Part shown: piece after piece, positions 31 to 33,666 of the stretch
Layout: each line of letters begins with the position of its first letter
Position numbering within the stretch: the first letter of the stretch is position 1
Sequence record: MZ475895.1
Direction: 5' to 3' (one strand)
Length of the DNA: 64,000 bases
Translations under genes and position numbers: made by a program
Notes under the pieces: generated by a model
The model's database searches: none
Seen by the model: the letters and a program-made list of their open reading frames with translations, nothing else
What the model was told of the DNA's origin: nothing

Positions 31-1446
31 ATGATGGGCCGTCTTGGCGTTTCCCATTTCAGTTCGGAGATCACTCGCAAAGCATTCCGCCGCATCACCA
101 AGCTGGTGGAAGTTAAAAGCGAAATAATTGAATGGGACGACTTGCTGGAAGACCCGAACTTGGCAGAAGAGTTCAGGGATAGTCTGCGCGAAGCAGATGA
201 GAAGCCAGCAAAGAGCATGAAGGGATTCGACCGCGTCTACGACAATCTGGAGAAGTATCGTCAACGCCGTGACATTATGAATATCGGTAAGATGATTGCG
301 AAAGATTTCGGTGAAGCGGATGCCGAAGAGTTCAACGAGCAAGAGTATATGCAAGGTCTGGCTGATAAGCTGGGTCAAGCGCAACGCGGCACTCGTTCTA
401 CCGAGAAAGTGCATACGTTCGGTGGTAAGAAAAGCAACGCTATCAAACTGGCGAAGCAAGTTATCCTGAACCCGAAAGAGGTGATGTACAAGACAGGCTT
501 CAAGAACTACGACAAACGAAATGGCGGTTGGCCTACAACGGGTGTCGTACTCTTAGCAGGTTCTACCTCTGGCGGTAAGTCTGTAATCTCGATGAACATC
601 GCCGATGCAATGGCAAAGATTAATGGCATCCACTGTTTGAAGGTCACCCTTGAGATGACTGCCGAGCAGGAGATGAAGCGTATGCTGTCCATGATCAGCG
701 GCATCGAGTTCAACAAGATCAAGCAGGGCAAGTTATCGAAGCGTGAGCAGAAGCAGTTAATTGAAGCTGCGAAGCAATACGACAAGATCATGACCAAGTC
801 TAAGGGACGTAACTCATTCACGTCTCCAGAGCGCGGCATGTCTATCGATGACGTTCTGTATATGTCTATCCCGTACGGCGTTCACGTAACCTTCATCGAC
901 TACGTTGGTCTGTTAGAAGGTGTGGACAACGACAACCAGTGGCGTGAACTGTCCACGATTGTTCGTAAAGCGAAAGTACACGCGAACGCAACAGGTCAGC
1001 TTGTTGTTATCCTGTGTCAGCTTGATGACCAGTCTGGTCGTATTCGTTACTCTGGTGGTATGCGTGAGCACGCCGACGTTGTATGGTCATGGAACTACTC
1101 TGACCCTGAGATTCGTGAAGGTCACGTTATCCCGATGCAGGTAATGAAAGCGCGTGATGGTGAGTTGTTCGAAATGGCAATCGCCGAAGCGTTCCACTTG
1201 ATGCGTGTGTCTGACGCAGAAGAAGGTGCTGAGATTCCTCAACGTGCTACAACGTCAGATGATGTTGGTGGATCTCCTGCAAAAGGTAATTTCAAGAAGA
1301 AAGGTAAGGGTAAAGACAAGATCGAAATCAAGAAGTCTCGACGTGCAGCAGCAGCGTTCCTATCAAGCGGCAGCGACGATGATGACGACGATGAAGATCT
1401 GCCGAAGAAGAAAAAGAAACGCAAGCAATATGACGTTGCTGCGTAA
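31..1446 (+). CDS. DnaB-like replicative helicase (probably N-terminally truncated by the window edge)
   Basis: Walker A GSTSGGKS, TLEM, FIDY Walker B, QL...HADVV, KARDG arginine-finger motif; low-complexity K/D-rich C-terminal tail. Confidence 0.9.
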   Translation: MMGRLGVSHFSSEITRKAFRRITKLVEVKSEIIEWDDLLEDPNLAEEFRDSLREADEKPAKSMKGFDRVYDNLEKYRQRRDIMNIGKMIAKDFGEADAEEFNEQEYMQGLADKLGQAQRGTRSTEKVHTFGGKKSNAIKLAKQVILNPKEVMYKTGFKNYDKRNGGWPTTGVVLLAGSTSGGKSVISMNIADAMAKINGIHCLKVTLEMTAEQEMKRMLSMISGIEFNKIKQGKLSKREQKQLIEAAKQYDKIMTKSKGRNSFTSPERGMSIDDVLYMSIPYGVHVTFIDYVGLLEGVDNDNQWRELSTIVRKAKVHANATGQLVVILCQLDDQSGRIRYSGGMREHADVVWSWNYSDPEIREGHVIPMQVMKARDGELFEMAIAEAFHLMRVSDAEEGAEIPQRATTSDDVGGSPAKGNFKKKGKGKDKIEIKKSRRAAAAFLSSGSDDDDDDEDLPKKKKKRKQYDVAA

Positions 1447-8378: not shown

Positions 8379-8857
8379 TGGACAAAACAGAGAGCGCAAG
8401 CTCCAATAGCGAAAGGCACCGAATCTATTTCAGGCAGCCGCAACGAGTACCTCCCTTCGATACAGCTTTTGTTCGTGCGTCAGACACCACGAGCCTCAAG
8501 CTGCTTCTCTCGGCTGCTCCTGAACATTGTCAGATCATATTGTTTACGGACGGCACCGGCACTGCTTATGCCATGAAACGCCTCTTTAAGCGCAAATTCC
8601 TTTTGAACTCTCAAGCTCTACAACTCGATCTGCCTACGATAACACTTACAGGTCAGGTCGTTTATCAGTTCGTTCGCGGCGGCTCTGTGCGCGACAAACT
8701 GAGTCGTTACTTCTGTGCTGGACCAAGCTATCTGCATGAGCTGGCACAAACGTCCGTTGAATCAGACGTTCTCGATATGTTCTGTTTGGGCTTAGACTTC
8801 CATGCGGTATTGCGTGCGAGGGAGCGTGGCCGTTCTATTGTCTTTACGGAGGAATAA
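8375..8857 (+). CDS. hypothetical protein
   Basis: 160-aa ORF in operon. Confidence 0.7.
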   Translation: MMDKTESASSNSERHRIYFRQPQRVPPFDTAFVRASDTTSLKLLLSAAPEHCQIILFTDGTGTAYAMKRLFKRKFLLNSQALQLDLPTITLTGQVVYQFVRGGSVRDKLSRYFCAGPSYLHELAQTSVESDVLDMFCLGLDFHAVLRARERGRSIVFTEE

Positions 8858-9885
8858 TGGGAAGAACGTTTGCGTCAGTGACTCGCCACTCACCTGTCGC
8901 TCAAATACCTAAGATGGAAATCAAATACGGTAAGAAGCCTATGCTTCACGTAGTTGATGCATCTAACTGGATGTGTCGTGCTTACTTTGCCACACGCGAT
9001 AAGCCTGTATATGCATCAGACGGTACACCCATCTACGGCCTGCGCCAGTTTCTGTACATGGTTCAGGACCTGATTGATATAGCAGCCAAAGACCCTAACG
9101 GTTGCTACATTGCTTTCTGCTTCGACCCAAGCTCAAACGAAACGTGGCGGTATCGTGCTCTGCAAAACTGGGCAGCAACCAAGAAGAAGAAATTCATCAG
9201 AGGCGTGTTCAAGAAAAGCAGCGACTATAAAGGCAACCGAGACCGCTCTCAAACAGCCGAGCTTGGTGTGCAGATGATTTTAGCGCGGCAGATTCTTGAA
9301 CTTGCAGGCTTCTATGTTGGCCTGAAAAAGCCATACGAGTGCGACGACCTTGTAGGAACTATCTGTCATAGATTCAAGCGCAAGTATCTGATCAAACTCT
9401 ACTCACGCGATAAGGACTATGTACAGCTTGTTGATCACAAGAACGTTGAACTCATTATGCAGGCGCAGTCTAACGCAAAAGAACGCCGCTTCGATTTCAA
9501 AACAGCGAAAGGCTTCTTCGGTGTTCCTGCCGACCGTGTTATCGATATGCTCGCGCTGTGCGGTGATGGTGTCGATAACGTTCCAGGCATTCCTGGTATT
9601 GGCGAGAAGACTGCTATTGAACATATTCATCGCCATGGTGGTGCTATTGAACTTCGTGACGCTCTGCTTAATGGCAAAGTGAAATCGAATGCAGGCTGGG
9701 CTAAAGCATTGCGCTCAGAGATTCCTTCGATGGACCTTGAACTCCAGATGGAGCTTGTCACTATCTGCCGCAACGTGCCGGGCATGCCTCGCACTATTGA
9801 TGCGTTTGCTAATCGCACGCCTGATGTTAAAGCGCTCAAAGCAGTTAAGAAGCGTCTGGGCCTGACTAAACTATTACACGTATAG
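8857..9885 (+). CDS. 5'-3' exonuclease / flap endonuclease (PolI N-terminal, T4 RNase H family)
   Basis: VVDAS, YKGNR, ECDDLVGT, SRDKDYVQL, GDGVDNVPGIPGIGEKTA helix-3-turn-helix. Confidence 0.95.
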   Translation: MGRTFASVTRHSPVAQIPKMEIKYGKKPMLHVVDASNWMCRAYFATRDKPVYASDGTPIYGLRQFLYMVQDLIDIAAKDPNGCYIAFCFDPSSNETWRYRALQNWAATKKKKFIRGVFKKSSDYKGNRDRSQTAELGVQMILARQILELAGFYVGLKKPYECDDLVGTICHRFKRKYLIKLYSRDKDYVQLVDHKNVELIMQAQSNAKERRFDFKTAKGFFGVPADRVIDMLALCGDGVDNVPGIPGIGEKTAIEHIHRHGGAIELRDALLNGKVKSNAGWAKALRSEIPSMDLELQMELVTICRNVPGMPRTIDAFANRTPDVKALKAVKKRLGLTKLLHV

Positions 9886-12543: not shown

Positions 12544-13314
12544 ATGAGCAATATCGATACCACAATGCCTGAAGGCAAATGGGAGTTCAATGAGTCGGTT
12601 GCTTGCGTGTTTGATAACATGCTGCAAAACTCTATCCCGTCTTATGGCCGTATGCGTGACCTGACGTATCGTCTGGGTCGTCGCTTCGTAACCCCGGGTT
12701 CAGCTATCGTCGATCTCGGTGCTTCACTCGGCCGAGCTATCGAGCCGTTTGCAAAAGAGTTCGGCAAGTATGACTACCATCATGCTGCTGACGCTCCTGG
12801 CGAAGACTACGAAACAGGCAATCACTATAGCCTGTTCGAAGTAGCGCCTGCGATGCGTGAACGTCTGGTGCAGAATGAAGTGCTCAACTCAGTGAATGCC
12901 AAACTGGAAAGTGAATCGCTGGTAGATACTGACACGTTTATGTTCGACGGTCAGGTGCATTGCTCGTTGATTCTGAGTGTGCTAACTCTCCAGTTCACGC
13001 CGATTGAACATCGTCAACACATTCTGGAAAACGTGTACAACTCACTGCAACCAGGCGGCGCATTCATCCTCGTTGAGAAGGTGTTAGGCGATAACAACTA
13101 TCTCGACAAAATGCTGGTGGACACCTACTACCAAATGAAAGGCGGTAACGGTTACAGCGCCGAGTCGATTGCGACTAAACGTAAGTCACTGGAAGGTGTA
13201 CTCGTTCCTGTTAAAGCAGCGTGGAACGAAGAACTGTTGCGTAAAGCAGGCTTCGGTCAGGTAGAAAGTTTCTATCGCGACCTGAACTTCGCAGGATGGA
13301 TTGCTATTAAGTAA
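12544..13314 (+). CDS. cmoA: CmoA-like carboxy-S-adenosyl-L-methionine synthase
   Basis: WEFNESVACVFDNMLQNSIPSY, IVDLGASLG, TLQF, LQPGGAFILVEK, KRKSLEGVL (conserved Arg), LLRKAGF..NFAGWIAIK. Confidence 0.88.
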   Translation: MSNIDTTMPEGKWEFNESVACVFDNMLQNSIPSYGRMRDLTYRLGRRFVTPGSAIVDLGASLGRAIEPFAKEFGKYDYHHAADAPGEDYETGNHYSLFEVAPAMRERLVQNEVLNSVNAKLESESLVDTDTFMFDGQVHCSLILSVLTLQFTPIEHRQHILENVYNSLQPGGAFILVEKVLGDNNYLDKMLVDTYYQMKGGNGYSAESIATKRKSLEGVLVPVKAAWNEELLRKAGFGQVESFYRDLNFAGWIAIK

Positions 13315-13323
13315 GGAAATACT

Positions 13324-14586
13324 ATGAAAGTAAACGGGCGTATCTTAGCTATCGTCCCACACAAGACAATGCAAGACCGTACCAAGTCGGGTGTGGGTTC
13401 GTACATTGATGGACTAGAGGCATACGGCTTCTGCGACTTTATCACGGACGGAGAGAACAGCTCCGTTGCGAAAAGTCAGTGGTTCACTTACGGTGATACT
13501 ACTCTCAGTGACGGTTATAAGATAGGGCATATCCAGAGCGAGTTGCTGATTGCACTTGAGCGCTTGCCTTACCGTGCGATTATTTGCAGCACGTATGAGG
13601 CGATTGAAGCCTGCGTGTCTCTGGGACTGCCAAAGATTATGCCCGTTTACTATCGCACGCACAACAGCTTTTTGCTCACACAAGATCTCAAGGGTCTTGG
13701 TGCAGAGAAGATCCACCGTGCGTTGTTGCAAGCACGCGTCACAGGGCTGCGCATCCTTGCTAACTGTGATTCGACTGCGATCAATCTTGCTGAGCGCTAT
13801 AAGACGCCAGCACACGTTGCCTACAACTCGTTCTCGGTGCCTGACTACAACCCACCAGCTCGGCGTGTTCCCCAGCTGTTGATTATCTGTCGCTATGAGA
13901 AGGTCAAGCGCACGTTGTTTGCTGCGCGTATTGCTGCTGCATCAGGATTACCCGTTCGTGTTATGACAGGCAGTGATCGTCAAGTACGCAATTGGGAGAA
14001 AGAGCTGGCTGAGGCGGGTGTCAAAGAATACACCGTCGTCAGTGGCCTTAGTGGTAAACAGAAACTCGAATTTATAGGCGCTTGCACAGTAGCCCTTTCT
14101 ACTGCGAGCGTTGAATCTTTTGCTAACGGTGTGCGTGAGTCTATCCCCTACTGTCCTACCTTTATCGTGCAAACATCCAAGTACGATTGGGCTAAGGACT
14201 ATACGCGCTTCTGTACTGCCGACAAGCATGTTCATATCAGAACTGTTGATCGCGTATCGGACCAAGCCGTAGCTGAAATCGGAAGTGAGATAGCGCGAGT
14301 TGCCACCACACGTTATCTGACAGGTCCGCAGCGTAAACAACTACTGACTGCTTGGGCAAAGCAAGTTGATCGTGGTTGGTCCGACTTTGTTCAGAAGGCT
14401 GTTGTTGACGATGACGGCAAGCCGCTGCGCACCGAGCTATATCAAGAACTGATCGACAAATCAGAAATCGATTGGTCACAAACGCCTACGCTAATGCGTA
14501 CTGTAAATGCGTTACATAAATGCCACGCTCGTTTGGGCCTGACATTTGATGGCACTAAAATCAAATATAAGAGGAAGCGCAAATGA
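13324..14586 (+). CDS. GT-B fold (GT4-like) glycosyltransferase
   Basis: YYRTHNS, ILANCDST, IICRYEKVKR, STASVESFANGVRES resembling E-x7-E donor-binding motif. Confidence 0.6.
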   Translation: MKVNGRILAIVPHKTMQDRTKSGVGSYIDGLEAYGFCDFITDGENSSVAKSQWFTYGDTTLSDGYKIGHIQSELLIALERLPYRAIICSTYEAIEACVSLGLPKIMPVYYRTHNSFLLTQDLKGLGAEKIHRALLQARVTGLRILANCDSTAINLAERYKTPAHVAYNSFSVPDYNPPARRVPQLLIICRYEKVKRTLFAARIAAASGLPVRVMTGSDRQVRNWEKELAEAGVKEYTVVSGLSGKQKLEFIGACTVALSTASVESFANGVRESIPYCPTFIVQTSKYDWAKDYTRFCTADKHVHIRTVDRVSDQAVAEIGSEIARVATTRYLTGPQRKQLLTAWAKQVDRGWSDFVQKAVVDDDGKPLRTELYQELIDKSEIDWSQTPTLMRTVNALHKCHARLGLTFDGTKIKYKRKRK

Positions 14587-15659
14587 GTGTTATCGGTGAT
14601 ATTTATAACATACCACAACCTTTCGCAATGTATGTCGGGAATTGTGAGACGCGTGCTCAAGCCAAAGTTGCTGCTGGTACAATCGAGTGGGCGCCAGAGA
14701 AAGTGTGCTGCACCGTAGATGATGGTAACAACCTGTTCCCCAACGTACCTTCAATCAACCCTGCTGACGTGCATAAGACAGATGCAGAAACTTTAGTGAT
14801 TGGCTGTGCACCTTTCGGCGGCCGCATTGACGAGCACATGGACAAAGCTATTCGTAGCGCTATCTATCGTGGACGCAACATTGCTGCTGCTATGCATACG
14901 CGCCTGGCGGATAATCCCGAATACGTTGAGCTGGCTGATCGCTACAACGTCAAGCTGTATGACTTCCGTCATCGTCCTGATGCGTACCCACTTGGTACCG
15001 GTGAGAAGCGTAGCGGTCTGCGTCTGTTAACTGTCGGTACTGATAGCTCCTGCGGCAAGAAGTTTACCACGCTATCTCTGTATCGTGAACTCAAGCGCAT
15101 CCACGCAGACACTGTGTTTTGCTCTACTGGGCAAACAGGCTTCCTGATTAGCGGTTGCGGTATCAACAACGACACGATTGTTGCTGACTTCCTCGCCGGT
15201 GCTGCTGAATCACTTTCGCCTGCTGGTCCTGCTGATCGTATCTATCTGATTGAAGGTCAAGGTGCTATCACTCACCCAGCATACACAGGCGGTAGCATGA
15301 GTCTGATTGCCGGCTCGCAGCCTGATCATCTCATCCTGTGCCACGCATGGAACCGTCAGAATCAGTTGGGCGTTAAGCGTAAGCCTGACCTTGATTTTGA
15401 GATGCGTGCTAATATTGAAGCGGCGCGTATTCACGGTCTCCACCCGACCTACATCGGTATCAGCATTAACTTCTCTGAGTGTGATTTGACACAGGACGAG
15501 CAAGATAAAATCCTGTACCAACTCGCATCAACGTATGAGATTCCCGTGTTCGACCCATCACAAGACACTTCTGTGTTGCGTGACCTCGCTCGTATGTTAG
15601 CAACTAAAGCCAAAGCAAGGAGCCTCGATGGCCAAGCATCCCCTGCGCAAGCTGTTTGA
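14583..15659 (+). CDS. DUF1611 / DgcN-family P-loop protein
   Basis: LVIGCAPFGG, GRNIAAAMH, LLTVGTDSSCGKKFTT, TGQTG, IEGQG, GSQPDHLILCH. Confidence 0.85.
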   Translation: MSVIGDIYNIPQPFAMYVGNCETRAQAKVAAGTIEWAPEKVCCTVDDGNNLFPNVPSINPADVHKTDAETLVIGCAPFGGRIDEHMDKAIRSAIYRGRNIAAAMHTRLADNPEYVELADRYNVKLYDFRHRPDAYPLGTGEKRSGLRLLTVGTDSSCGKKFTTLSLYRELKRIHADTVFCSTGQTGFLISGCGINNDTIVADFLAGAAESLSPAGPADRIYLIEGQGAITHPAYTGGSMSLIAGSQPDHLILCHAWNRQNQLGVKRKPDLDFEMRANIEAARIHGLHPTYIGISINFSECDLTQDEQDKILYQLASTYEIPVFDPSQDTSVLRDLARMLATKAKARSLDGQASPAQAV

Positions 15660-16503
15660 ACAGCATGTGAAAAAAGAAGTGAAAGCAGACAAGGTAGCTG
15701 TGCTGCTTTCATCTGGCCTCGATGGTTTGGTCAGTGCGTTAGCTGCACACGATCTCGGTAAGAAGGTGCACGCCTTCACTTTCCAAATGGGTGACAACCC
15801 TAGCTTTGACAGTCGCCACGCACAGATTGTTGCGCAGAAGATGGGGTGGGAGTTCACTCTCGTTAAAGTTCCCACCAGCGTGTCTGCTATCGCATTAGCG
15901 TGGCGCGTGCTGCATTCCAAGTATCGCTGCATTAAGAAGCGTGACTACGAGTGTGCGTACCCTATGGTCTATTGCTACAAGGCAATCAAAGACGCTGGGT
16001 ACAAGTATGTGCTAAGCGGGCTGGTGGCCGATGGTTACTTCCTGTATAACCGTAACACGCATATTCAGAAAATCAGCGGGCCACACTCTGACGCTCAGAA
16101 GTATCATGAGTTCCGTACTCAATACTTTAGTCCGTGGCTTAAACACGGTAAGAAGTCTCTGGGCGTTGACGGGTATAACCCGAGCGGCATGTTGCAGCAT
16201 GAGATGTTGTGCGATAACTTCGGCCTGATTCACGTTAACCCGTGGATGCAAAACAAGGTGTTTGACTACTTCATCAAATACACTTGGCAGGAGTTGAATC
16301 AGCCTAAGCAGAAGATGCCACTAACCGAAGCGTGGGCAGAACACATTGCTCTTGTTGGTCATCGTCCACACAGGGGCTATCAGACAGAAGCCAAAGTGCC
16401 TGAATACTTTGAGCATCTGATCGAGAACCCTGAGATTAACTTCAACGGGCGCAAGCGCATCATGGACGTGGCACGCGACTGGTCCAAACGAGAGCCTGAA
16501 TAA
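15628..16503 (+). CDS. asparagine-synthetase-like ATP-dependent amide ligase (no glutaminase domain)
   Basis: PP-loop VLLSSGLDG, VLSGLVADGYF (cf. SGEGADELFGGY), NPW, KMPL; 291 aa. Confidence 0.75.
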   Translation: MAKHPLRKLFEQHVKKEVKADKVAVLLSSGLDGLVSALAAHDLGKKVHAFTFQMGDNPSFDSRHAQIVAQKMGWEFTLVKVPTSVSAIALAWRVLHSKYRCIKKRDYECAYPMVYCYKAIKDAGYKYVLSGLVADGYFLYNRNTHIQKISGPHSDAQKYHEFRTQYFSPWLKHGKKSLGVDGYNPSGMLQHEMLCDNFGLIHVNPWMQNKVFDYFIKYTWQELNQPKQKMPLTEAWAEHIALVGHRPHRGYQTEAKVPEYFEHLIENPEINFNGRKRIMDVARDWSKREPE

Positions 16504-17021: not shown

Positions 17022-17474
17022 ATGAATCTGTTTTCTATTTTAAAACAGCAAGTGAAGAAATCCCTGACGACCGAAGCAACGCTTGAGCCAGAAGTGCGCA
17101 AACACTTTGACTGGCGTTTCAGTGTTGACGTCAAAGGTCTGATGTACATTGTAGGCAAGACAGGCGCTAACACCTGCTTCTATCTTGAGCCAGGTCACGT
17201 TGAGCCTACTGCCTGCTATCCTGATGAACTGCTTGCGAAGATTGATAGCTGGGGCGCTGCGAAGTACGTGTCCTACGCTGTCTACTTCAAGAAGTTCAGT
17301 AGCCCTGTAGCTGAGAACATCAAGACGCTTGAGCAGGCCAAGACAGGCAAGCCTAAAGCGTTTAAGAAAGGCTACTTTATCTGTGGCGTAACACCGAAAG
17401 GTAAGCGCGTCAAACTGTGTCGTCTGCACAACAGCCTAAGCGGTATGCAGTGGGTTGATGTAGACCAGAAGTAA
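17022..17474 (+). CDS. hypothetical protein
   Basis: 150 aa, GAGG RBS. Confidence 0.7.
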   Translation: MNLFSILKQQVKKSLTTEATLEPEVRKHFDWRFSVDVKGLMYIVGKTGANTCFYLEPGHVEPTACYPDELLAKIDSWGAAKYVSYAVYFKKFSSPVAENIKTLEQAKTGKPKAFKKGYFICGVTPKGKRVKLCRLHNSLSGMQWVDVDQK

Positions 17475-27730: not shown

Positions 27731-28831
27731 ATGACAGGTCCTCTCGATCTCACTAACCCACAGCACTTCGAACTGTACTCGCTGCACAGTGTTGATGCAC
27801 AGTATATCAATCTGTGTGACGCACTCCTAACGCAGGGTACGCACGAATCTGACCCAGAGCGCACTGACGATACGTGGCATACGCTGATCGGTATTGGCTT
27901 CCAGTTGTCTAACACCAACATCGCTTTCCCTGCGCTGCTGTCTAAGCGTGTCAACGTCCGTGCAGCTATCGATGAATCCTGCTGGTTCGCACGCGGTGAA
28001 ACGAACATCGCAACTCTCGGTTCTAAAATCTGGAACGAGTGGGCAGATGAAGAAGGTGAGAACGGTCCTATCTACGGCTTCCAGTACCGTAACTGGCCTG
28101 ACATTAAAGTGTTCAACACTGTCGAAGGCATGATTGAGCAGCACATCCCACCAGCGATGATTGAGCGCATCTCGAAAGAGATTAACCGCATGAAGGCGCA
28201 GGGCTATATCGAAACTGCGTTGCCTGACGGTCGCGTGTTGTACGAAGGCTATATCGATCAGTACGCTGATGCACTGCGTCAAATCATGGCGCGTAGTCGT
28301 AGCCGCCGCATTCGTGTGCAAGCGTTCAACCCAGGTTACGTTGGTATGCAGAGCCTGCCGCCGTGTCATACCGAGTTTGAGTTCAACGTGACCAAAGCCA
28401 CTGCGTATGAGATTGCGCAGATGGAAGCACGCTCAATGCGCCCTGACGCTGACTCACTGCATATCGTGGTGACGATGCGCAGCAATGACGCGCTATTGGG
28501 CAGGCCCTTCAATATCGTGGGCTACAGCGCCATGCACCAGTTGTTTGCGAAGTGGGCTGGTCTGAACGTTGGTTCGTTTACTCTGAACGTGACCAATATG
28601 CACATGTACGATCACCACCGCGAAGCGTATGCACAACAGCGTGAGCAGTGGCTGGAGCTACAGACGCAGATGCAGACGACAGGCAAACCTGTTGTTTACC
28701 CTACCCTCGAAATCACTGACGACATTCTGGGCCTGACGCCAGAAGAGCTGCTGGATAACGTCAACGTCGATTGGTTCGAGCTGGTGGACTACTCTCCTAA
28801 ACCTGCTGTTAAAGGACGCGTAACCAAATGA
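27731..28831 (+). CDS. thyA: thymidylate synthase
   Basis: IWNEWAD, GPIYGFQYR, SRR, LPPCH, MRSND.LLG.PFN, NMHMY. Confidence 0.95.
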   Translation: MTGPLDLTNPQHFELYSLHSVDAQYINLCDALLTQGTHESDPERTDDTWHTLIGIGFQLSNTNIAFPALLSKRVNVRAAIDESCWFARGETNIATLGSKIWNEWADEEGENGPIYGFQYRNWPDIKVFNTVEGMIEQHIPPAMIERISKEINRMKAQGYIETALPDGRVLYEGYIDQYADALRQIMARSRSRRIRVQAFNPGYVGMQSLPPCHTEFEFNVTKATAYEIAQMEARSMRPDADSLHIVVTMRSNDALLGRPFNIVGYSAMHQLFAKWAGLNVGSFTLNVTNMHMYDHHREAYAQQREQWLELQTQMQTTGKPVVYPTLEITDDILGLTPEELLDNVNVDWFELVDYSPKPAVKGRVTK

Positions 28832-30830: not shown

Positions 30831-31529
30831 ATGGCAAAAATTGCTAAAGCAAAGGAAGGGAAAAAGAAAAGCAACCCTATGTTGATTGACCTGAAAAAGT
30901 TCAAGTCAGTTAAACAGCTTAAGGGTGCGAAGTACAACCCTCGTTTCATTACAGACAGCCGACTGAGAGCGCTCGAAGGTTCTTTGGGCAGCTTCGGTGA
31001 TTTGTCTGGCGTGGTGTTCAACAACAGCGTAGACAGTGGCGTGCTGATCTCAGGCCACCAGCGTCTCAAGTCGATTGAGAAGTGGGACTCGCGCATTGAG
31101 ATTCAGCAAACGTCTGACAAGTACGGCACGGTAGCGCTGGGTTATATCCATGCCACCAGCGCCAAAGGTAAAACGATCAGCATCCCACTGCGTATCGTTA
31201 ACTGGTCAGATAAGAAAGTGGAGTTTGCTGCTAACATTGCTGCGAATGCCCACGGCGGTGAGTTCGATAACAAAAAGCTCGCGTCACTTGTCGAGAAGCT
31301 GGACCTGACTACAATCAAGCCAGCACTTATCGGGCTTGACCCGTTAGAGATTCGCGGCCTGCAACAGACGCTGAGCAAACAAGCTATCGTCGAGCAGGAA
31401 AAGCGTGTTGGTAAAACAACAGGCAAAATGAACGGCAGCACCGGCGAGTTCAAAGAGTACACGACTGATGAAGTTGGTACTGCGCTGACCTGCACCTGCC
31501 CACGTTGTGGCTTTAAGTTCGAGGGATAA
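30831..31529 (+). CDS. ParB/Srx N-terminal-domain protein with C-terminal zinc ribbon
   Basis: KYNPRFI...SLGSFG...VVFN...ISGHQRL; NIAAN..GGEFD..KL; CTCPRCGFKF. Confidence 0.85.
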   Translation: MAKIAKAKEGKKKSNPMLIDLKKFKSVKQLKGAKYNPRFITDSRLRALEGSLGSFGDLSGVVFNNSVDSGVLISGHQRLKSIEKWDSRIEIQQTSDKYGTVALGYIHATSAKGKTISIPLRIVNWSDKKVEFAANIAANAHGGEFDNKKLASLVEKLDLTTIKPALIGLDPLEIRGLQQTLSKQAIVEQEKRVGKTTGKMNGSTGEFKEYTTDEVGTALTCTCPRCGFKFEG

Positions 31530-31530
31530 C

Positions 31531-33666
31531 ATGATCATCAAGCCGCCTACAATGAAAGAGATTAATAAGCTGCCCAAGCCTTGGTCAGGTATGAGTTTCT
31601 TTGCAGGTTGCGGTGGTTCATCTACCGGTCACAAGATGGCCGGTATTAACATCCTACTGAGCAACGAGTTCGTGGACGCGGCTCGTGAATCGTATGAAGC
31701 GAACCATCCAACAACCAAAGTGTTGCCCCACGATATTCGTCGTCTTGACCCGAAAAAGCTGCTTAGCTATTGCGGCCTGAGCCAAGGCGAACTGGACTTG
31801 CTTGACGGCAGTCCTCCGTGCTTTACCGAAGACACGTTCATTCATACTGACACTGGTATGAAGTTCATCACTGATATGCGCATCGGTGACTTCGCTATGA
31901 CCTCTGTTGGTAAGTATCATCCTGTGTATGACACGATGGTGCGCCCGTATGACGGTCAGATGCACAGAATTGAAACGCTGCTCGGTCAGAACAATGCAAC
32001 ACCTGAGCATCCATTCTTTGTTCGTCGTCAGAATGAAGAAACTGGCGGGTACAGTGAGCCGTTCTGGTGTGACGCTAAAGATGTGCAGGAAGGCGATTTG
32101 TTGGGTACGCCTCGTGTTACGCCTGACATGGGTGAAGCACACACGCATGAGATTATCTCGTCGTTGACTGCGCAGCTTGTGCGTTGGATTGCATTGCCTG
32201 AGTTTTGGTGGCTGATTGGTCACTGGTGCAATCGCGGTGCAATCGATAAGATTCGTGGTGTCGATGTTATTCAGTTCACCTCGATGACAGCGATGGAAAA
32301 CTCGCTGGTGGAACAAGCGTTCGACGTGCTCAAGTTAAGCAGCATCAACAGCGCTTCGTCCGACATGGGCGTTCACCGTAAGACCGTCCGTGTTGTTATG
32401 GACACAGACCTGTTGCTGTTCTTGCGTATGTTTATCGCACAGGGCAAGAAGTCTATGTCCCGCCGTATGCCAGGCATGATCTTCCATCTGGCCAAAGAGC
32501 TGAAACAGCAATTCATTCTCGGCTATCTGGGTCGTGATTACGTCACAGCAATGGGCGTTGGTCATGCGTTAGAGGCTGACTCAAAGCGCTTCCTCGTTGA
32601 GATGAATTACCTGTGCTGCTCTGCGTTCAACAGACCGCTGTTCGATGCAATGTTGTTCACTGACTTGCATTACGGCAGTCCTATGTTACCGCCGAGTCGC
32701 TTCATCACCAAAGAGCACATTGGCTTCCTGTTCTTACAAGAAGAGGTTAATTTCTTCTTTGAGTTCGAGCCGGAAGACCCGCATCTGTGGGTAGAAGTGA
32801 TTGAGAACTTTACGCACCATGAAACGTGCAACGTCTACAACTTCTCAGTCAGTGTTGATGAGACGTATGTTGCTAACGGTATGGTCGTGCATAACTGCAA
32901 AGGGTTCTCGACTGCGGGTGTGAAAGAAGACGGCTGGGGCAAAGAGGTTAAGTACAGCGGCAACAAGTATCAGCAAGTCGATGACCTGTTCGATCAGTAT
33001 TGCCGTATGCTCAAGCACATGCAGCCTAAAACGTTCACTGCGGAAAACGTTAGTGGCCTCGTTAAAGGTGCGTCGAAGGGTTACTTCATTGAAATCATGA
33101 AGACCTTTGATCAGCTAGGCTACTATGTGCGAGCACCGTTGCTTAATGCTGCGTGGCTCGGTGTGCCTCAGTCGCGTGAGCGTATCATCTTTATGGGTGT
33201 GCGCAAAGACGTGGCTAAAGCACTCGGCTATAAGACTGCGTTGACTGCTGTGCCTGATGTAACACCTCAATCAAGCATGGCGTTCCTTGCAGATGCACTG
33301 CCGAACATTCGTCGGTATAAAGGTACGGAGCGTGACATTATCAAGTATCTGCCTGCTGTTAACGGGCCGATGCCTACGATTACCGCTGCTGACGCTATCG
33401 CATACGAAACAGCACGCTTCTCCTCTGCTGGCTTCATTGAAGACGACAAAGGGCACAGACGCAAGCTGACGATTGACGAACTCAAAGTTGTATCAGGCAT
33501 GCCTAGTGATTACGTGCTCACAGGTAAGTTTGAAGAACAATGGGAACGTCTCGGTCGTGTGTGCGTACCTGCAATGACGTGTGCAGCGGCAAGCGCGTTG
33601 ATACGCCATGTGCTTGAGCCGTACGCGAAGCTGCGTAAAAAGAAACCTGGGGATCGTTTTCGTTAA
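31531..33666 (+). CDS. C5-cytosine DNA methyltransferase homologue, intein-containing; probable carboxymethyltransferase
   Basis: FAGCGG (I), NEF (II), DI (III), GSPP/CKGFS (IV), ENV (VI), PQSRER (VIII), motif X reads RLGRVCVP; GAGG RBS before ATG 31531. Confidence 0.9.
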   Translation: MIIKPPTMKEINKLPKPWSGMSFFAGCGGSSTGHKMAGINILLSNEFVDAARESYEANHPTTKVLPHDIRRLDPKKLLSYCGLSQGELDLLDGSPPCFTEDTFIHTDTGMKFITDMRIGDFAMTSVGKYHPVYDTMVRPYDGQMHRIETLLGQNNATPEHPFFVRRQNEETGGYSEPFWCDAKDVQEGDLLGTPRVTPDMGEAHTHEIISSLTAQLVRWIALPEFWWLIGHWCNRGAIDKIRGVDVIQFTSMTAMENSLVEQAFDVLKLSSINSASSDMGVHRKTVRVVMDTDLLLFLRMFIAQGKKSMSRRMPGMIFHLAKELKQQFILGYLGRDYVTAMGVGHALEADSKRFLVEMNYLCCSAFNRPLFDAMLFTDLHYGSPMLPPSRFITKEHIGFLFLQEEVNFFFEFEPEDPHLWVEVIENFTHHETCNVYNFSVSVDETYVANGMVVHNCKGFSTAGVKEDGWGKEVKYSGNKYQQVDDLFDQYCRMLKHMQPKTFTAENVSGLVKGASKGYFIEIMKTFDQLGYYVRAPLLNAAWLGVPQSRERIIFMGVRKDVAKALGYKTALTAVPDVTPQSSMAFLADALPNIRRYKGTERDIIKYLPAVNGPMPTITAADAIAYETARFSSAGFIEDDKGHRRKLTIDELKVVSGMPSDYVLTGKFEEQWERLGRVCVPAMTCAAASALIRHVLEPYAKLRKKKPGDRFR
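31819..32895 (+). mobile_element. intein (359 aa) with degenerate LAGLIDADG-like region, inserted before the catalytic Cys
   Basis: CFTEDTFI start, ATPEHPF block B, VYNFSV..YVANGMVVHN end, +1 Cys. Confidence 0.93.

Follow-up and report, generated by a model that had tools for sequence, protein, structure and literature searches.

The closest described relative of the gene analyzed here comes from Synechococcus phage S-B43. Its product, SpCmoX, is a naturally occurring DNA cytosine C5-carboxymethyltransferase and forms 5-carboxymethylcytosine (5cxmC) at GC sites (Yang et al., Nat Commun 2025; PMC12783734). In its 1.9 Å complex with carboxy-S-adenosylmethionine (Cx-SAM; PDB 8YF3), R350 substitutes for N304 of M.HhaI and touches the carboxymethyl group; as cofactor, the wild type uses Cx-SAM and not S-adenosylmethionine (SAM), and the R350N mutant is active with neither (PMC12783734). 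Formation of 5cxmC in E. coli requires cmoA, and in the S-B43 system Cx-SAM is provided by the phage's own CmoA, while CmoY, an asparagine-synthetase homologue consisting of the ATP-binding domain only, ligates glycine onto the 5cxmC carboxylate (PMC12783734). Filtering for the SPPC motif and R350 gave 5,615 CmoX candidates, whose frequent companions are CmoA, an AMP-forming ligase, and a ParB-domain protein (PMC12783734). The present work concerns a 64,000-nucleotide stretch of sequence record MZ475895.1, referred to as the window, and in particular one open reading frame (ORF) of 711 amino acids (aa) within it (Table 1). With a probability of roughly 85%, this ORF encodes a CmoX-family DNA cytosine C5-carboxymethyltransferase that is made as an intein-containing precursor.

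Carboxymethyl transfer has also been obtained by engineering. In M.MpeI N374K and M.MedI N377K, a positive charge at the position of the motif-X Asn pairs with the Cx-SAM carboxylate (PMC12015181, PMC12783734). Together with the Dcm mutant named next, these Lys mutants derive from CG- or CCWGG-specific SAM enzymes and retain methylation, whereas the window protein is a natural Arg enzyme. Dcm N436K is reportedly another engineered carboxymethyltransferase, as cited in an earlier note on this DNA (the original prediction), which had read the motif-X Arg of the window ORF as the mark of a natural carboxymethyltransferase. That principle was published in 2025 with the CmoX family, and the idea is thus no longer new.

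The window is 100% identical, at the same coordinates, to the record of Erwinia phage pEa_SNUABM_45 (MZ475893.1), in which the product of the gene is annotated as a "hypothetical protein" and nothing more; this is a jumbo phage that infects Erwinia amylovora and has a genome of 263.9 kb. In the available part of the CmoX paper and its supplements (PMC12783734), Erwinia, Dickeya, PaBG, and inteins are all unmentioned. The papers on PaBG, AD1, and the SNUABM phages mention neither DNA modification nor an intein in CmoX.

Probable Assignment to the CmoX Family

The ORF matches the C5-methyltransferase models PF00145 and TIGR00675 with 131.5 and 121 bits (cut-offs 22 and 100.65), and the motifs that had been described as intact are all present, namely motif I (FFAGCGG), motif IV (GSPP/C, the slash marking the intein, contiguous only once this is removed), motif VI (ENV, 33043-33051), and motif VIII (QSRER, 33169-33183). 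Motifs I, VI, and VIII are invariant in a 61-sequence alignment. Removal of the intein leaves a protein of 352 aa, the size that had been estimated. In fold, in motifs I, IV, VI, and VIII, and in the covalent Cys mechanism, this protein resembles M.HhaI, M.HaeIII, Dcm, and DNMT1 (PF00145), but it differs from them in the Arg that replaces the Asn of motif X and in its predicted cofactor, Cx-SAM in place of SAM.

Sequence and structure comparisons both lead to SpCmoX. The best match among PDB sequences is 8YF3 (2e-60, phmmer), followed by M.HaeIII (2e-19). An AlphaFold2 (AF2) model of the spliced 352-aa protein, with a predicted local distance difference test score (pLDDT) of 92.6 and a predicted template-modelling score (pTM) of 0.92, retrieved the same entry first in Foldseek (E 1.2e-26, TM 0.75/0.79), with HaeIII and HhaI next at about 1e-18; the closest SAM-dependent methyltransferase structure scored about 6e-19. 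Residues F25, E47, F48, D69, C98, and R350 of SpCmoX correspond to F24, E46, F47, D68, C97, and R317 of the spliced window protein. The combination by which Yang et al. selected their candidates is likewise found, as S94-P95-P96-C97 and R317 align with S95-P96-P97-C98 and R350. The window protein therefore shares with SpCmoX the C5-methyltransferase fold, the SPPC motif, an Arg in the "ER.GR" context, and the adenosine-binding residues; unlike SpCmoX, it has an intein of 359 aa inserted at the catalytic Cys. The hosts also differ, an enterobacterial plant pathogen for the window phage and a cyanobacterium for S-B43.

These residues were followed in an alignment of 123 sequences, in which the 120 top-ranking of 5,780 homologues were joined by the window protein and two phage references. 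SPPC is invariant (123/123), and F24, E46, F47, and D68 are conserved in 121-123 of the sequences. The ratio of nonsynonymous to synonymous substitution rates (dN/dS) of the extein is 0.06-0.11 against the orthologues of phages AD1, Alexandra, Y3, and Yen9-02, values that are approximate as dS is saturated; on these figures the extein appears to be under strong purifying selection.

The Motif-X Arginine

The position of the Arg was judged on four independent alignments, to M.HaeIII, a DNMT1-family methyltransferase chain, E. coli Dcm, and 8YF3. HMMER places the "LGR" of the window protein on the "IGN" of both M.HaeIII and the DNMT1-family chain; residue 436 of E. coli MG1655 Dcm, the Asn of RQFGNSVVVP, lies in the R317 column, which bears out its earlier identification as the motif-X Asn; and R317 aligns with R350 of 8YF3. 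The Gly-Asn that motif X carries across the PF00145 superfamily, where it touches the methionine part of SAM, is thus Gly-Arg here, with R317 filling the Asn column. The observation underlying the original prediction is confirmed, including the codon (CGT, exactly at 33556-33558), with two corrections. The string QWERLGRVCVP was read correctly, but the ORF translation puts its start at 33538, one codon before the 33541 that had been given; and the Asn-to-Arg switch stands, while the canonical Gln of the motif aligns with R314 and not with Q311. Binding of the Cx-SAM carboxylate by the Arg, also proposed there, is supported by analogy, through the alignment with SpCmoX R350 and the contact of the latter with the carboxymethyl group in 8YF3. 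The broader proposal of a natural carboxymethyltransferase gains from the top match in both sequence and fold, the equivalence of R317 and R350, and a phage-borne CmoA. Because R350N of SpCmoX is inactive with both cofactors, however, the R-to-N mutant that had been suggested as a control would give no clean switch of specificity.

In the 123-sequence alignment the Arg column contains R in 117, N in 4, and M in 2 sequences, and the Arg is kept in 5/5 of the Erwinia, Dickeya, and Yersinia phage orthologues compared, the window protein counted. Judged from these alignments, the Arg is no chance substitution. It is ancestral in the clade of the window enzyme, and by analogy with SpCmoX the enzyme is probably exclusive for Cx-SAM. 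The orthologues PaBG gp309 and those of Erwinia phages Y3 and Alexandra, Dickeya phage AD1, and Yersinia phage fHe-Yen9-02 have in common the Arg, an upstream ParB-like gene, and a CmoA in the genome; their annotations read "DNA cytosine methylase" or "hypothetical protein". The PaBG enzyme (335 aa, motif ERLGRSVPP) is without an intein, whereas the Erwinia, Dickeya, and Yersinia orthologues all bear one.

Asn occupies the Arg column in homologues P0051, P0059, P0060, and P0117, and Met in P0103 and P0110, all at 39-49% identity. Most of their contigs, at about 3-6 kb, are too short for a check on CmoA. These sequences point to possible natural switches of cofactor type within the clade. Further homologues carry M (Flavobacterium phage Fpv8), N (Aphanizomenon phage CL131 and Burkholderia phage E555), or L (Melnitz) in this column, and belong to phage groups essentially without a CmoA match. 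Since these four also lack the Glu before the Arg position, the full signature is taken to be "ER.GR".

Glu313 was seen to co-vary with Arg317 (33544..33558, E313-R317 of the spliced protein), the Arg-type enzymes reading "ER.GR". E313 or R314 is lost in four of the six non-Arg close homologues (KRCGN, ARLGN, and ELLGM twice), and the more distant non-Arg homologues read KRIGM, ARIGN, and ARIGL. Glu313 may position Arg317.

The alternative that survives best, improbable as it is, holds that the protein is an ordinary SAM-dependent 5-methylcytosine methyltransferase in which the Arg is a tolerated motif-X substitution. Apart from motif X, the classical motifs of C5-methyltransferases are all intact, the Asn of P0051, P0059, P0060, and P0117 shows what close homologues accept at this site, and some Asn-type enzymes, such as wild-type M.MedI, are weakly active with both cofactors (PMC12015181). 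Against this, wild-type SpCmoX, with the same Arg and the same "ER.GR" context, refuses SAM; the Arg predominates in the alignment and tracks with phage-encoded CmoA; and the phage CmoA and the carboxylate-activating ligase would otherwise be left without an obvious role on DNA.

Cofactor Supply and Genomic Partners

Like the S-B43 system, the window phage encodes, besides the CmoX homologue, a CmoA, an asparagine-synthetase-like ligase with only the ATP domain, and a ParB-like protein next to the enzyme. The CmoA homologue would have Cx-SAM synthase activity of its own, as judged from its sequence. Its Y3 orthologue is 83% identical and annotated as carboxy-SAM synthase. As S-B43 is absent from the phage-collection matches, phages S-CRM01, TurkishDelight, and PaBG served as proxies in the comparison with SpCmoA and SpCmoY, and tblastn to the window CmoA gave 1e-24 for the homologue of S-CRM01 and 4e-58 for that of PaBG. 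Across the phage collection, 48 records from Erwinia, 2 from Dickeya, and 6 from Synechococcus phages carry the enzyme, and the counts of CmoA-bearing records are equal; for Erwinia and Dickeya, no enzyme-bearing record is without CmoA.

The candidate CmoY-type ligase gave no match to a glutamine amidotransferase (GATase) domain and thus has the architecture of SpCmoY. It was found by Pfam; a tblastn search of the window with the TurkishDelight ParB and GATase-containing asparagine-synthetase-like proteins returned nothing. The ligase diverges from that of the S-B43 system and is accompanied by a GT-B-like and a DUF1611 protein. PaBG carries a contiguous block of ParB, CmoX, CmoA, a 150-aa protein, and an asparagine-synthase-like gene. 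Both AD1 and Y3 have a "repressor" (the ParB-like protein), a cytosine methyltransferase, an asparagine synthase, and a "methyltransferase" (CmoA), whereas the related JA11 has none of them (PMC6143709).

For the ParB-like protein, of 232 aa and with a C-terminal CxxC ribbon, no Pfam match was obtained even at E = 10. Its gene and that of CmoX are adjacent also in metagenomic contigs L005, L006, and L007 and in PaBG, Yen9-02, AD1, and Y3. In the window, its stop codon (TAA, ending at 31529) lies one base before the ATG of CmoX (31531; 31527..31533), an arrangement that suggests translational coupling of the two genes.

A slightly less probable alternative than plain methylation is that the divergent CmoA-like protein makes a different anionic SAM analogue, with the result that a group other than carboxymethyl is transferred, and that the neighbouring cassette acts off DNA. 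The homologue scores below the equivalog level and has an internal insertion (two matched stretches), the GT-B and DUF1611 cassette differs from the published S-B43 system, and the DNA chemistry of this phage group is absent from its literature. Yet the protein spans the CmoA model end to end with no comparable match to another methyltransferase family, it is related to the CmoA-like genes that adjoin CmoX homologues in PaBG, S-CRM01, and TurkishDelight, and the cofactor-pocket residues of the enzyme agree with the Cx-SAM complex, all of which favors carboxymethyl as the group transferred.

An Intein at the Catalytic Cysteine

The intein splits motif IV directly before the catalytic Cys, and all splicing residues of class 1 are present, that is, Cys1, a TxxH (T-P-E-H), His-Asn, and the +1 Cys. 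Across the junction, the spliced protein reads GSPPCKGFSTAG. Since the intein-free metagenomic homologues P0001-P0003 (64-72% identity) read straight through this junction, with an unbroken GSPPCKGFS(T/S)AG, the boundaries of the intein are exact. TIGR01443 recognizes it with 17.3 bits, above the cut-off of 15.6. The central region of about 200 aa matched no Pfam or PDB sequence and no known homing-endonuclease family; LAGLIDADG-like strings in this region were seen by eye only and are unconfirmed.

Each of the four orthologues from Erwinia, Dickeya, and Yersinia phages in the alignment with the window protein has the intein, at an intein identity of 36-66%; with a dN/dS of 0.17-0.25, it is regarded as old and constrained. 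Inteins of unrelated size but with the same splicing residues occupy the same site in P0004 (259 aa) and in P0017 (171 aa, a mini-intein), so that the junction between PP and C of CmoX is a recurrent homing site. Because the +1 Cys is also the methyltransferase nucleophile, the precursor would be inactive until spliced. New here is an intein whose +1 Cys is the nucleophile of the enzyme; for the "methylase intein" of an actinophage paper, no link to C5 enzymes was established. A reading of the intein as a pseudogene marker was considered and rejected in view of dN/dS and the intact motifs.

Least probable of all is a functionally dead gene, in which a selfish intein in the catalytic motif does not splice or leaves an inactive product: the intein does interrupt the PPC motif itself, with sub-threshold Pfam scores and no recognized homing-endonuclease family, but inteins typically sit in active-site motifs, the window ORF is free of stop codons, as are its four orthologues from phages only about 75% identical in DNA, purifying constraint extends from the extein to the intein, and the set of splicing residues from Cys1 to the +1 Cys is complete.

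Proposed Mechanism and Its Weighing

Under the CmoX reading, the class-1 intein would excise itself after translation and join GSPP to CKGFS, rebuilding motif IV and turning the +1 Cys into the nucleophile C97. The spliced enzyme would bind Cx-SAM with F24, E46, F47, and D68 on the adenosine and R317 on the carboxylate; C97 would attack C6 of cytosine, the carboxymethyl group would pass to C5, and beta-elimination would release 5cxmC in the phage DNA. The phage CmoA would supply Cx-SAM from SAM and host prephenate, with the CmoA of the host as a possible back-up. Less firmly, the ligase might adenylate the 5cxmC carboxylate and then amidate it, and the GT-B-like and DUF1611/DgcN-like proteins may supply the amine or decorate it further. 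The likely purpose is to shield the phage DNA from host nucleases.

Several points weigh against this reading. Identity to SpCmoX is only about 30-40%, and about 60 residues (roughly 221-282) between two aligned stretches do not align to it at all; as this is the expected target-recognition region, GC specificity should not be assumed. The carboxymethyltransferase activity is predicted from homology, and splicing from the intact motifs. N or M replaces R in some close homologues, and the position can therefore switch inside the clade. The CmoA homologue scores 136 bits in TIGR00740, where the equivalog cut-off is 193, and its gene is not adjacent to that of CmoX; in contrast to the contiguous cmoA-cmoY-cmoX of S-B43, the window genes are dispersed, with CmoA 18 kb upstream. 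The PP-loop of the ligase, SSGLDG, departs from SGGxDS (SGGIDS in Y3, SSGVDS in PaBG). The Pfam scores of the intein fall under the gathering cut-offs, at 32-35 versus 35.8 bits for PF14890 (Intein_splicing) and 22 versus 28.4 bits for PF13403 (Hint_2).

If the reading holds, the motif-X Asn-to-Arg switch in its "ER.GR" context is a single-residue marker that picks a natural carboxymethyltransferase from raw sequence. The CmoA/CmoX/CmoY pathway would then extend to many jumbo phages that infect Pseudomonas or enterobacterial plant pathogens (Erwinia, Dickeya, Yersinia); in these phages its genes go under the labels "hypothetical protein", "tRNA methyltransferase", or "transcriptional repressor". 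Several such phages are in development for fire-blight biocontrol, and the chemistry of their DNA matters for how they evade restriction, for their host range, and for sequencing and cloning.

The Variable Cassette and Other Window Genes

Between CmoA and the ligase lie genes for a GT-B-like and a DUF1611/DgcN-like protein (Table 1). The former, of 420 aa, is a near-orphan, for which 5.8 billion sequences contain only 7 homologues; a remote homologue, P0127, has PF00534. Foldseek places the AF2 model of the 420-aa protein with GlgM, BshA, and MshA at E 2e-10 to 1e-8. The latter also matches NF041892 with 4.9e-85, under the cut-off of that model. PDB sequence searches with the intein, the 420-aa protein, and the ligase gave no match. 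In a metagenomic jumbo-phage contig (L014, SRR26596593), the order CmoA, GT-like, DUF1611, and asparagine-synthetase-like is kept at 37-59% identity. A conserved 150-aa protein is encoded after the ligase; its PaBG homologue, gp307, sits between CmoA and the asparagine-synthetase-like gene, and the 147-aa homologue of L014 is at the end of the cassette. It may be an unrecognized component of the pathway.

Table 1. Features of the window discussed in the text, with positions in the 64,000-nucleotide stretch.
Feature	Position	Strand	Basis
CmoX precursor gene (C5-cytosine methyltransferase homologue + intein), 711 aa	31531..33666	+	PF00145 6e-38, TIGR00675 8e-35
N-extein, aa 1-96: motif I (FFAGCGG), F24, E46, F47, D68, S94-P95-P96 of motif IV	31531..31818	+	alignment to 8YF3
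Intein, 359 aa (aa 97-455): Cys1 (CFTEDT), block B T-P-E-H, C-terminal VVHN, then +1 Cys	31819..32895	+	
C-extein, precursor aa 456-711: begins at catalytic Cys (C97 spliced), then motifs VI, VIII, X	32896..33663	+	
Motif X, QWERLGRVCVP, with "ER.GR" signature	33538..33570	+	
Arg codon CGT, R676 precursor / R317 spliced; predicted Cx-SAM carboxylate ligand	33556..33558	+	alignments
ParB-like DNA-binding protein, 232 aa, C-terminal CxxC ribbon	30831..31529	+	phrog_620 2.3e-31; PaBG ParB-like protein 2e-36
CmoA homologue (carboxy-SAM synthase)	12544..13314	+	TIGR00740 1.2e-39; phrog_4752 6e-78
GT-B-fold glycosyltransferase-like protein, 420 aa	13324..14586	+	AF2 pLDDT 81, pTM 0.81; Foldseek
DUF1611/DgcN-like protein	14583..15659	+	PF07755 1.4e-46, PF17396 5.7e-18; PDB 7XRJ 6.8e-50
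Asparagine-synthetase-like PP-loop ligase, CmoY-type candidate, 291 aa	15628..16503	+	PF00733 1.7e-13 (residues 6-138); TIGR01536 1.6e-15
Conserved 150-aa protein	17022..17474	+	PaBG gp307 homologue 3e-20; L014 147-aa protein 5e-45

The cassette (12544..16503) varies among Erwinia and Dickeya jumbo phages, with three types. Type A, found in the window phage and about 17 records, consists of CmoA, the GT-B-like and DUF1611 proteins, and the asparagine-synthetase-like ligase; type B (AD1, Alexandra, and others) is without the GT-B-like gene; and type C (Y3, Yoloswag, Yen9-02) has CmoA alone in common, with a different ligase and an oxygenase. This variation suggests lineage-specific hypermodifications built on 5cxmC. 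With its GT-B-like and DUF1611/DgcN-like members, the cassette of the window is new relative to the published system and hints at an uncharacterized hypermodification, of which, going by the structural model of the 420-aa protein, sugar transfer may be a part. Together with the intein at the catalytic Cys, it offers concrete leads, both to new base chemistry and to a DNA-modifying enzyme that is gated by splicing in nature. A bolder version, which we regard as speculative and rather unlikely, is that 5cxmC is only an intermediate, that the ligase, DUF1611, and GT-B proteins build an acylated or glycosylated amide unlike the glycine amide, with adducts differing between types A, B, and C, and that splicing is an obligatory, possibly redox-sensitive switch.

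Directly after its cassette, L014 has a gene of the DAHP_synth_1 family (DAHP or KDO8P synthase; L014:14162..15025) without a counterpart in the window. It might serve to increase the flow from shikimate to prephenate for CmoA, or act in sugar-acid synthesis.

Other genes of the window include a long thymidylate synthase (366 aa, 27731..28831), a DnaB-like helicase (31..1446), and a 5'-3' exonuclease (8857..9885). A window-wide Pfam sweep further detected a dCMP deaminase and a D12-class N6-adenine DNA methyltransferase, neither assigned to a coding sequence (CDS); with the latter enzyme encoded in the window, a second DNA methyltransferase coexists with CmoX.

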